A stretch of 64,000 bases of DNA, taken from sequence record PP942979.1. One strand, 5' to 3'. The notes below the pieces were generated by a model. The model was not told the DNA's origin and did not search any database. It saw only the letters and a program-made list of their open reading frames with translations. Shown piece after piece: positions 54,881 to 57,842 of this stretch (positions are counted from its first letter, which is position 1; each line of letters starts with the position of its first letter). The position numbers and the translations under genes were made by a program.

Positions 54881-56488
54881 ATGGCACGTATCGAAACTAA
54901 CACTAATCTGGTTGGCAAAACTATCGTTCTGCTGGACGGCACCAAAACTAAAATCGAAGATGCAATCGCGTCTGGTTATAAAGTGAAGGGCCGTTCAACG
55001 AAAGTTGCAACTCGCTGTGTTATCAAAGAAGGCTCTCACTTCCGCGAAATCGAACGCATGAACATGAGCCAGCTGGAAGATACTGGCGAAGGTTACGTTA
55101 AGCTGAAAGAAGCGAAAGCGTCAGGCAAGAAAACTGCCGTCAAGAAAGAAGCAGCTACGTCGAAAGCGTCGGGCAAGAAAGCTGGTGGTAAAGCTGCGGC
55201 GAAAGACGCGAAGCCGTCGAAAGACAAAGAGCCGAAAGTTCGTCGTAAATCTTCCGAAGAGCAGTCCGAAGATTATCAGAATCTGGCTATGGCTATCATC
55301 AAAGGCAAAGCCAAGCCGGCTGTTGAAATCGAAGCTGTTGACGAAACGCTGACCGATACTGTCGCCAAACGTATTGTCGATCACGTTCTGTCGTCTGATA
55401 TTGCGCGAGTGTGCGCTGACAACAAAACGCCGATCGCTAACGACCTGGACGTGACGTATGAAGCCGAATACGCGCCTGAAGGTAACGTGATTCAGATTAC
55501 GATGAACCTGCAATACGCCGCGCCGGTTAAAGTGCTGTCTCGTCCTACGCTCGAAAACGCAGAAGCTATCGAAGCCCGTGCGCAGAAGATGATCGCGCCG
55601 AAGCTGTCTAAGAAACTGGCGAAAGCTATTCGTGAAGCATTCAGCCTCGAAGACGCTAACGAGCTGGAAGCCGGTACCATGCTGTTGTCTGATGGTGCTG
55701 AGTTCGTCTACTACGGCGAATCTGCGAAGCATCTGGGCAAAGCGCTGTTGTATGTCGTAGAGACCGACAAGTTCAAATCTGTTCTCGGTTCTACGCTGGG
55801 TGAGTATGAAATCCCAGACGCAGAAGAAGAGGAAGAAGTAGAAGACGAAGAGGAAATCGAAGAAGAAGAGGAAGAAGAGGAGGAAGAAGAGGAAGAAGAG
55901 GAAGAAGAAGACGGCGAAGAGGAAGATGCCGAAGAATCGCAAGGCGCCGAGTATGAGTTCGTCGCTGTCGAAGCTGACCAGCTGAAACTCGTCAACAAGA
56001 AAGTAACAGCGAAGTATCACGCCGCTCTGGCAGAACGCTTCGGTGTTGACGAAGAAGCGCTGGCCCCTGGCCTGATGTTGACTGACGGCGAAACTACTTT
56101 CGCTTACCTCGGTTGCGATAGCAAAGGCGGTCTGCTGGTGATTGACCTGTCTGACGATGCGGACGAAGACGACAACGTGCTGGTCTACAGCAAAGCCGAT
56201 ATCAAAACGCTGACTGACTTTAGCCCTGTGATTGACAGCGGTGAAGAAGAAGCGGATGGCGAAGAAGAAGAAGACGACGCCGAAGACAATAACGCTGACT
56301 TCGAAGAAGAAGACGCTGACGAAGAAGAAGAAGAAGACGAAGACTTCAACTTCGACGACCTGCCGAGCGAAGATCTGGAAGACCTGTCTGACGACGAACT
56401 GCGTGACCGCGTAGTCGAAGCCGGCCTGACCACTCCGCGCAAAGCAGACAAAATGAACGCGTCTCAACTGCGTAAGCTCCTGAAATAA
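54881..56488 (+). CDS. 535-aa protein: basic N-terminus, two repeated domains, poly-Glu linkers, C-terminal HeH-like module
   Basis: GAGGAG RBS; first gene after the tandem promoters. Confidence 0.85.
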   Translation: MARIETNTNLVGKTIVLLDGTKTKIEDAIASGYKVKGRSTKVATRCVIKEGSHFREIERMNMSQLEDTGEGYVKLKEAKASGKKTAVKKEAATSKASGKKAGGKAAAKDAKPSKDKEPKVRRKSSEEQSEDYQNLAMAIIKGKAKPAVEIEAVDETLTDTVAKRIVDHVLSSDIARVCADNKTPIANDLDVTYEAEYAPEGNVIQITMNLQYAAPVKVLSRPTLENAEAIEARAQKMIAPKLSKKLAKAIREAFSLEDANELEAGTMLLSDGAEFVYYGESAKHLGKALLYVVETDKFKSVLGSTLGEYEIPDAEEEEEVEDEEEIEEEEEEEEEEEEEEEEEDGEEEDAEESQGAEYEFVAVEADQLKLVNKKVTAKYHAALAERFGVDEEALAPGLMLTDGETTFAYLGCDSKGGLLVIDLSDDADEDDNVLVYSKADIKTLTDFSPVIDSGEEEADGEEEEDDAEDNNADFEEEDADEEEEEDEDFNFDDLPSEDLEDLSDDELRDRVVEAGLTTPRKADKMNASQLRKLLK

Positions 56489-56576
56489 GTTCGACCTGTA
56501 ATACAAAACACTGATGATAGATGCGGTTCAGACAGAGCCGCATCTCTGACAACTAAGCTGATTGAGGAATCACACT

Positions 56577-57842
56577 ATGTCAAACGCAAACAAAATCCTG
56601 TTAAACGCTCGTGTTCGTCGTCTGGACGGTACTGTAACTTTCATCAACAAAGTAAACGCGAACGGATATAGCACCGACGCGAAGGGACCTCAGATCCCGG
56701 TCAAGCGTCTCGTAGTCGCAGGCAAAACTCTGAAAGAGATTGAGTCGCCGTTCTCGAAAGAGGAGCACGTAATCGTGCAGGGCGTATCAGTCAAACTGAA
56801 TAAGCGCCAGCAGCGTGAACTTGCTGATGGCTCGCTCGATGTTAAGTCTTTGAACCCTGACTTTGGTAAGCTGGTCTTCATCGACCCTGAAACAGGCAAA
56901 GCGACTGACGGGAAAGCCGTGAAGTCGAAAGCGAAAGCGAAAGATAAAGACGGTGTGAAAGCGGGTGTGAAAGCTACTCGCCAGCGCAACAAAGATACGC
57001 GCACTAAGAAAGAACGTAAGGCAGAAGTCGCTGCGTCAAATGACGAGCTGGACATGTTGCCGTCTGATAAGATTGATCGTAAAGCAGAGCTGGCCGGTAT
57101 CATCGACGCGACTGTGGCTGATGCGACAACCAAAGAACGTCGCAAGCTGTTGTCCGAAGCGTTCGATATGGACTGGAAAGATGTGAAGAAGCATGGCGGT
57201 AAAGGCGTCATCAAACATCTGGGCCGCAAAGCCGCGCAGTCTGCTGTGAATAAACTGAATGCTACCGTAACGCAGGATGCTTTCATTAAGCAGATGCCTG
57301 TTGCGTTGAAGCGTCTGATTCAGGACGGTACGTTGACGCTTAACAGAGCGCAGATTGAGCGCGTACTGAGTGCGCTTGACCTCGACGTGAAGTTCTACAA
57401 CATTGCTATGCAGACACTGTTGGGCAATCTCAAGCTGTCACTCGACCAGTCTGTCGCTGAGCCGAAAGCTGGTAAGAAAGTGAAGAAGGTGAAGAAAGCA
57501 AAAGCTACTTACGCCTCAGAGAAAGAGCAAAAGCGCCGTGTTAAGAAAATGAAACACTCGCTGATTGCTCCGCCGAAGAAAATGCTGAAAGAAGCGAAGG
57601 CCCATATGAAAGCTGCCAAAGCGGCTATCGCACAAAAGCTGGGTATCTCTTCGAAAGAAGTTCAGCGGGGTCTGCTGGTGTATCGTGCGAACGGCGATGA
57701 ACTGATGTTTGTTGCCTGTGATATGACGGGCCCTGTGTTCATCGGCAACGACGGTGAAGTGGCAGTGATTGCCTACGCAAACGTAGAGACTGCCTTCGAC
57801 TTCACTCTGAGCAAAACCTCTGAACTGGACGCCACTGTATGA
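56577..57842 (+). CDS. 421-aa Lys-rich protein paralogous to 54881
   Basis: GAGG RBS before MSNANK; shares the LDGT.T.I...A.GY...EIE N-terminal domain. Confidence 0.85.
   Translation: MSNANKILLNARVRRLDGTVTFINKVNANGYSTDAKGPQIPVKRLVVAGKTLKEIESPFSKEEHVIVQGVSVKLNKRQQRELADGSLDVKSLNPDFGKLVFIDPETGKATDGKAVKSKAKAKDKDGVKAGVKATRQRNKDTRTKKERKAEVAASNDELDMLPSDKIDRKAELAGIIDATVADATTKERRKLLSEAFDMDWKDVKKHGGKGVIKHLGRKAAQSAVNKLNATVTQDAFIKQMPVALKRLIQDGTLTLNRAQIERVLSALDLDVKFYNIAMQTLLGNLKLSLDQSVAEPKAGKKVKKVKKAKATYASEKEQKRRVKKMKHSLIAPPKKMLKEAKAHMKAAKAAIAQKLGISSKEVQRGLLVYRANGDELMFVACDMTGPVFIGNDGEVAVIAYANVETAFDFTLSKTSELDATV

Follow-up and report, generated by a model that had tools for sequence, protein, structure and literature searches.

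Why would a phage carry, side by side, two related genes whose products bear strong and opposite charges? This question is raised by a locus of Erwinia phage phB78, a jumbo myovirus (261.8 kb; genus Alexandravirus) and one of the jumbo phages known as the 'Lupandier group' (PMC7412058). The stretch analyzed here (the window) comprises 64,000 nucleotides and corresponds to positions 186001-250000 of the phB78 record (PP942979.1); positions below are those of the window unless the record is named. On its + strand, the gene of P1 (SHZ78_304, 54881-56488) encodes a protein of 535 amino acids (aa) with an isoelectric point (pI) of 4.32 and a net charge of -74. It is followed by the gene of P2 (SHZ78_305, 56577-57842), whose 421-aa product has a pI of 9.89 and a net charge of +31. 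P1 contains 141 aspartates and glutamates for 67 lysines and arginines, and P2 contains 82 lysines and arginines for 51 aspartates and glutamates, in agreement with the opposite charges reported in a preliminary description of this locus. Both proteins are annotated as hypothetical, and their PHROGs (33433 for P1 and 32501 for P2) are both of 'unknown function'. The ATG start codon of P2 at 56577 agrees with the annotation and has GAGGAA just upstream.

P1 and P2 are tandem paralogs that share two domains

According to the preliminary description, the N-termini of P1 and P2 align and a second domain, here called B, occurs twice in P1 and once in P2; it proposed a comparison by HHalign as a check. 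We compared the domains using the family alignments of P1 (profile A1) and P2 (profile A2). The N domain of P1 (residues 4-75, 54890-55105, + strand) and that of P2 (residues 2-58) were matched by HHalign with a probability of 95.1% (E 3e-8). BLASTP aligned them with 29% identity over 52 aa (E 4e-4), and their local alignment score of 65 was reached by none of 2000 shuffles (24.3 +/- 4.8). Overall, the two N domains of phB78 are 25% identical.

The two B copies of P1, B1 (residues 224-308, 55550-55804) and B2 (residues 357-450, 55949-56230), matched each other with a probability of 95.3% (E 2e-8; 1/2000 shuffles). B2 also matched the C-terminal domain of P2 (residues 334-410, 57576-57806; 85.6%, E 6e-6; 0/2000 shuffles). 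The direct comparison of B1 with this P2 domain was weak (36%, E 4e-4) and not significant pairwise, so that the link between them is transitive, B2 matching both. The 24 other domain pairings were null (HHalign probabilities of 0.1-7%), as were the control pairs in the shuffle tests, and the middle alpha/beta domain of P1 (residues 128-212, 55262-55516) has no P2 counterpart among these pairings. A paralog search of the whole phB78 genome detected no further copies of the N and B domains.

Independent support for paralogy came from a comparison of the AlphaFold model of P1 with the predicted viral structures of BFVD. This model matched the P2-type proteins of phages Yoloswag (E 2e-10) and Dickeya JA13 (E 1.5e-5), as well as a 632-aa protein of phage NCTB (E 4e-19). 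Our results establish that P1 and P2 are tandem paralogs made of two previously undescribed domains. Both alignments put forward in the preliminary description are thus borne out, with significant domain similarity and null control pairs, and the ten peptides quoted there were all found exactly. Its coordinates for the B-domain stretches had to be corrected, being 12-15 nucleotides (nt) too low; the true starts are 55619, 56018, and 57618.

Adjacency and opposite charge are conserved

Sequence searches found both families only in Alexandravirus-like jumbo phages of Erwinia, Dickeya, and Yersinia and in related metagenomic contigs. When 1.84 billion representative proteins were screened with a profile of P1 residues 1-312, only 34 clusters (50% identity) were retrieved. 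Nearly all full-length matches present an N barrel, a basic linker, and a strongly acidic remainder, with net charges of -33 to -117; a few matches are short fragments or basic P2-type proteins.

A P2-type gene lies directly after the P1-type gene in Alexandravirus, Yoloswag (L017), pEa_SNUABM_5 (L016), Salmondvirus JA13, and the metagenomic jumbo-phage contigs L025 and L027. This adjacency is kept in every lineage where both genes were found (six pair-bearing genomes examined). The sign of the charge is equally constant, since all 26 P1 homologs have net charges between -53 and -84 and all 24 P2 homologs between +23 and +34. The pair of the Dickeya phage JA13 consists of a 537-aa protein at -60 followed by a 308-aa protein at +29, and the distant metagenomic pairs reach -48/+18 (L025) and -49/+10 (L027, a 218-kb contig). 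Even orthologs with no more than 32-38% identity keep the opposite charge, although their linker sequences have not been conserved. The conservation of both adjacency and opposite net charge is therefore established.

The N domains of the two paralogs also evolve together in some lineages. Within a genome, the N domains of P1 and P2 are 74% identical in L025 (L025:2808-3047 vs L025:4235-4474) and 81% identical in L027 (L027:6488-6727 vs L027:8001-8240), values that equal or exceed the identity between orthologs. In these coding regions, the paralogs share identical DNA runs of 43 nt (L025) and 54 nt (L027), against 12 nt between orthologs. Such long runs point to gene conversion between the N domains in both contigs, and concerted evolution of this domain is established for these lineages.

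Folded modules of P1 and P2 are joined by charged disordered linkers

We modeled both proteins with AlphaFold2 run on the family alignments. The folded modules reach predicted local distance difference test (pLDDT) values of 80-92 and are separated by disordered charged linkers. In P1, the model shows a barrel (1-75), a disordered segment (78-128), the alpha/beta domain (128-212), B1 (224-308), a second disordered segment (315-355), B2 (365-441), a third (453-491), and three short helices (504-534). The N domain is modeled as a small beta-barrel of at least 6 strands (pLDDT 75-89) with a net charge of +4, which ends in an invariant DTGEGYV turn. It is followed by a basic Lys/Ala/Pro-rich linker (residues 76-125, 55106-55255; pLDDT <50), whose net charge of +13 lies within a range of +11 to +18 kept in all homologs. 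Owing to this linker, P1 is a block polyampholyte and not a uniformly acidic protein. B1 is made of helices followed by four strands.

The negative charge of P1 is carried mainly by disordered linkers (pLDDT <50). Acidic linker 1 (residues 311-356, 55811-55948) has a net charge of about -35 and is encoded by GAA/GAG triplet repeats, and acidic linker 2 (residues 451-497, 56231-56371) ends in an invariant F-x-F-D acidic-aromatic motif. The preliminary description, which assigned poly-Glu/Asp linkers to P1 and Lys-rich linkers to P2, was right in both respects and overlooked the basic linker of P1. The length of the GAA/GAG arrays (55822-55935 and 56243-56343) varies even among relatives with 94-98% identity, a variation suggestive of replication slippage.

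The C-terminal module of P1 (residues 498-535, 56372-56485) consists of three short helices with pLDDT >90. Together with the acidic stretch before it, this module is found twice in gp312 (L018:661-1455; E 7e-9 and 2e-5), and it is weakly seen in gp296 (50290-51546) and gp303 (54309-54521). The latter has a weak Pfam match to Ish1 (HeH-type).

P2 starts with its N domain (net +6), homologous to that of P1, and a beta extension (residues 59-112); together they span 56580-56912. A basic disordered linker (residues 113-165, 56913-57071), a helical middle domain (residues 166-292, 57072-57452), and a Lys-rich linker (residues 293-333, 57453-57575; net about +9 to +10) lead to the single B domain. 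The model agrees with this order, being beta-rich over 1-112, disordered over 114-165, helical over 166-290, and disordered over 293-306, with a B domain at about 310-410 (pLDDT 83-92). Some P2 homologs (P0058, P0065, P0066, and P0068) carry an insertion of ~55 aa that is a tandem duplicate of the first helical unit of the middle domain (A2 columns ~150-250). The duplicated helix is weakly similar to the one that opens the B domain (HHalign E 0.005-0.04).

Promoter-like motifs upstream of P1

Two promoter-like sites precede P1 on the + strand. The distal site (54530-54574) contains a CTGGACAAAAT element and a TTGTCT/TAGAAT pair with an extended -10. The proximal site (54776-54821) lies ~60 nt 5' of the P1 start codon; a 5' hairpin and a GAGGAG ribosome-binding site come after it. 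The 11-mer CTGGACAAAAT occurs 3 times in the window vs 0.03 expected. Both sites belong to a family of seven copies of one motif, of the form GCAAATAACTGG[A/T]CAAAAT, 27-29 nt, and TATA[A/C]T followed by a 5' stem-loop. The motif starts with an A-rich element; a weak -35 comes next, then an extended -10 of sequence TATAAT or TATACT and the 5' hairpin. The copies lie at window positions 26906, 39934, 43357, 52355, 54530, and 54776 and, outside the window, at record position 253155. All are on the + strand, between 212.9 and 253.2 kb of the record, and one is found upstream of the gene for the topoisomerase II large subunit. Among 15 related loci, the proximal site is conserved in position and sequence at 13, and the distal copy is present at 3. 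The tandem promoters described earlier are thus both genuine copies of the family, and only the proximal one is conserved.

Two other motifs were found in the genome. Seven minus-strand genes have CGCTAATTT 35-47 nt ahead of their start codons (record positions 62568, 75706, 88107, 101054, 157611, 161610, and 165925, all outside the window). As these genes include those for the tail sheath and the endolysin, CGCTAATTT is a candidate late-promoter motif. CTGTAAAT, with 34 copies scattered on both strands, may mark a third promoter class. Neither CGCTAATTT nor CTGTAAAT is found upstream of P1 or P2. This, with the sigma-70-like motif upstream of the pair, suggests that P1 and P2 are probably early genes transcribed by the host polymerase.

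Between the two promoter-like sites, positions 54580-54700 (+ strand) form a structured non-coding stretch. At its end, a G+C-rich, terminator-like hairpin precedes a run of T (about 54651-54696). The minimum free energy of the stretch is -75.9 kcal/mol (z = -4.67), and none of 200 shuffles folded as well. Rfam gave no match for this stretch, which is a candidate small RNA of about 115 nt or a candidate attenuator or attenuated leader.

P1 and P2 head a conserved gene cluster for highly charged proteins

Downstream of P2, the co-oriented genes of gp306 (127 aa), gp307 (153 aa), and gp308 (426 aa, pI 9.2, net +11) occupy 57839-59950 on the + strand and are syntenic with the pair across lineages. 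They are followed on the same strand by gp309 (59978-62986), a protein of 1002 aa with a pI of 4.05 and a net charge of -198, in which poly-Asp/Glu tracts alternate with short helical modules. Orthologs of gp309 (net -126 to -156) lie downstream of P1-type genes in every lineage examined. The gene order is conserved in all of these lineages: P1, P2 where present, one or two genes for products of 120-155 aa (missing from one contig), and then the genes of a basic protein (410-455 aa; gp308 in phB78) and of a hyperacidic protein (685-1054 aa; gp309 in phB78). In phB78 and one metagenomic contig, topoisomerase II genes are located a few kb downstream of the cluster. The P1/P2 pair thus opens a conserved cluster of highly charged proteins upstream of topoisomerase II. 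No informative family matches were obtained for gp306-gp310 or gp296-gp303. The same + strand block of the phage also contains a gene annotated as 'CRISPR/Cas system associated-protein' (2059-3144).

P1 and P2 match no described family

Scans of Pfam, NCBIfam, and PHROGs with the whole proteins, the single domains, and all A1 members yielded nothing above threshold. Profile searches of the PDB with A1 and A2 returned low-complexity or repeat artefacts (histone tails and designed 'Pizza' propellers) and one borderline match, between P2 residues 53-118 and the ribosomal protein uL24 (E 0.0018), in which one of the many PDB uL24 sequences was matched. No Pfam match to KOW was found for the whole proteins or their domains. 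Foldseek searches of the PDB with the full-length models gave no match with E <0.5, whole-protein queries diluting domains of 60-90 residues. The best weak matches (E 1.2-2, probability 0.35-0.51) were the L2 SH3-like domain, a PWWP domain with ssDNA, the UvrD Tudor domain, and KOW; further weak matches were the Mfd Tudor domain and Agenet, all of these leads being small beta-barrels.

The C-terminal module of P1 may resemble SAP, LEM, and HeH domains, as its last 38 residues are modeled as short helices (504-513, 519-523, and 527-534) and give sub-threshold scores. It differs from them in staying below the Pfam cut-offs, both for SAP (PF02037; 15.3 bits vs 23.9, E 0.015) and for LEM (PF03020; 13.5 bits vs 24, E 0.055). 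In the whole-protein scan, no A1 member matched SAP or LEM at E <=1, and the whole-protein Foldseek query was likewise without significant match.

Histone-like families (HU/IHF, H-NS, histone fold, and alpha/beta SASP) were not matched by P1 or P2 in Pfam or NCBIfam; SASP came out at E 0.023 only, under the Pfam cut-off, and the PDB histone matches were confined to a low-complexity basic region (E 0.2 or worse). For the DNA mimics Ocr, ArdA, and Arn, there was no match in Pfam, PHROGs, the PDB, or Foldseek searches. The acidic tracts of P1 recall nucleoplasmin-like chaperones, of which no core-domain match was found in Pfam, the PDB, or Foldseek searches. Pfam, PHROGs, and NCBIfam also gave no match of P1 or P2 to transcription-factor families. 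The preliminary description knew of no matching system, and our family, structure, PHROG, and literature searches found none either. Two candidates were dropped. A motif resemblance of the B domain to an AbrB/MazE-like swapped hairpin had no Pfam match even at E 10, and a cleavable capsid-targeting leader at the P1 N-terminus was abandoned on inspection by eye, the T4 protease motif not being matched by residues 1-6.

A tentative model for P1 and P2

Our preferred reading, to which we give a probability of only about 0.35, is that P1 and P2 are an early, electrostatically complementary pair acting together on nucleic acid. In both proteins, the N barrel and the Lys-rich disordered segment would form a module bringing them to the same target, most likely DNA; alternatively, this module could let P1 and P2 associate through like domains. 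With its basic linkers, helical domain, and single B domain, P2 would act as a polycation, coating or condensing its target in the manner of a linker histone. P1 would be the polyanion, with two B domains, poly-Glu/Asp linkers between its modules, and a HeH-like helical module at its end. Its acidic linkers could neutralize or chaperone basic partners (P2, the basic segment of P1 itself, and perhaps gp308) and repel other polyanions. Together with gp308 and gp309, the pair might adjust the degree of DNA coating or condensation at an early stage of infection. We infer the early timing, the binding to nucleic acid, the interaction between P1 and P2, and the condensing or chaperoning activity from the features described above. 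The model is consistent with the positive N domains (net +4 to +6) and the basic linkers next to them in both proteins, and with the weak fold and sequence leads, which are all small nucleic-acid- or polymerase-binding barrels.

The functional acid/base pair proposed in the preliminary description is partly supported, with conserved adjacency, opposite charge, and gene conversion of the N domain in its favor. Several observations weigh against it and against our reading. Phage NCTB and contigs L028 and L029 carry a P1-type gene and no P2, and therefore the pair is not obligate. P1 has a basic segment of its own, and the P2 of JA13 is without a B domain. Inter-domain confidence in the models of P1 and P2 is low (predicted template modeling score 0.25-0.31). 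Neither protein has significant similarity to DNA-binding, histone-like (HU, IHF, and H-NS included), chaperone, or DNA-mimic families. The promoters assigned to the pair are putative, their assignment coming from consensus alone. In the literature on Alexandravirus, Y3, Yoloswag, Salmondvirus, and fHe-Yen9-02, we found no transcriptome, virion proteome, or localization data.

Could the two proteins instead be virion components? An acidic and a basic protein could be loaded into the prohead with the DNA and released into the cell at infection. In jumbo myoviruses, many virion proteins are encoded outside the main structural block. The extreme charge and disorder of both P1 and P2 would suit such packaged and ejected internal proteins, and the + strand block also holds terminase, portal, and depolymerase genes. 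We nevertheless consider this unlikely, because the sole recognizable promoter upstream of the pair belongs to the sigma-70-like class, as does that of the topoisomerase II gene, the tail-sheath/endolysin motif CGCTAATTT is not found there, no structural PHROG or Pfam match was obtained, and the head genes lie ~135 kb away on the other strand. The predicted early promoter would fit with a role of P1 in host takeover, in which its poly-Glu/Asp linkers mimic nucleic acid and titrate host DNA-binding proteins (nucleoid proteins, restriction or other defence nucleases, and RNA polymerase), P2 having a separate role. All P1-type proteins are strongly negative, with net charges down to -118, and other acidic proteins are encoded nearby (gp296, gp300, gp302, gp303, and gp309). 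Such a decoy is improbable in our view, since P1 shows no similarity to Ocr, ArdA, Arn, or other mimics and, unlike the folded surface of a mimic, carries its charge in disordered repeats of variable length. It would also leave unexplained the shared domains, the adjacency, and the gene conversion with a basic paralog.

The uL24 alignment of P2 and the weak fold matches to L2, KOW, and the polymerase-binding Tudor domains of UvrD and Mfd raise a different idea, namely that a KOW/uL24-like N barrel and its basic tail bind rRNA, mRNA, or RNA polymerase, and that the pair modulates translation or transcription and does not organize DNA. This appears very unlikely, as all these matches are below significance, one PDB uL24 sequence of many was found, and Pfam gave no KOW match. 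Finally, the two genes might have no functional coupling. A tandem duplication followed by independent divergence would make adjacency a historical relic and opposite charge a by-product of slippage-prone GAA/AAG repeats; the linkers are indeed triplet repeats of variable length, and P1 stands alone in several lineages. Against this doubtful explanation, the sign and size of the charge are kept in every homolog, down to orthologs with 32-38% identity whose linker sequences are not kept, and the pair is adjacent in 6/6 pair-bearing genomes examined.

Comparison with known charged protein systems

Histone H1 with prothymosin-alpha and histones with nucleoplasmin are systems made of a polycation and an acidic disordered chaperone. 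P1 and P2 resemble them in setting a Lys-rich, largely disordered polycation beside a poly-Glu/Asp protein, and in keeping charge complementarity while the linker sequences drift. Unlike these eukaryotic partners, P1 and P2 are phage paralogs that have two folded domains in common and lie in an apparent single transcription unit. They have no sequence or fold relation to either system. In HMGB1, basic DNA-binding modules are regulated by the protein's own acidic tail (autoinhibition). P1 is similar in that a single chain presents a basic module (the barrel and the +13 linker) followed by long acidic tracts, an arrangement found in ~30 P1-type clusters; it differs in having no HMG box and in its much larger acidic part, broken up by folded B domains.

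Among phages, the prohead core of T4 combines acidic scaffold proteins with the basic internal proteins IPI-III, so that strongly acidic and strongly basic proteins likewise accompany the DNA. In contrast to this core, the P1 and P2 genes lie outside the head module, follow a sigma-70-like promoter motif, and have no head-protein homology. Gp27 of Bacillus phage SPO1 (PMC13401047), a transcription factor of modular build, drives phase separation. It is, as P1 and P2 would be, a modular phage protein proposed to concentrate machinery on nucleic acid during infection, and it provides a precedent for phage condensates. From its description, Gp27 is a single driver, unlike an acid/base pair of paralogs, and condensates of P1 and P2 would be purely conjectural.

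A bolder possibility, which we regard as decidedly unlikely, is that the charged cluster (P1 at -74, P2 at +31, gp308 at +11, and gp309 at -198) and phage DNA form an electrostatic condensate without a shell by complex coacervation. In jumbo phages without a chimallin nucleus, such a condensate could provide a compartment for replication or protection from host nucleases, and the shared N domain would be the address tag recruiting both polyanion and polycation.

Significance for jumbo phages

To our knowledge, it is not understood by what means jumbo phages that have no protein-shelled nucleus organize their 260 kb of replicating DNA and keep it safe. The locus described here, with its pair and two hyper-charged neighbors, is a defined and testable candidate for such DNA organization. 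The pair, which is conserved and probably early, joins a shared and presumably targeting domain to polyelectrolyte tails of opposite sign. If P1 and P2 bind DNA and each other, they would be a phage counterpart, with unrelated folds, of the eukaryotic systems of polycation and acidic chaperone, and would offer a simple two-component model of charge-driven assembly in bacteria. If they do not, P1 and P2 would still represent a well-delimited new protein family of about 34 clusters, from which two new domains can be defined.

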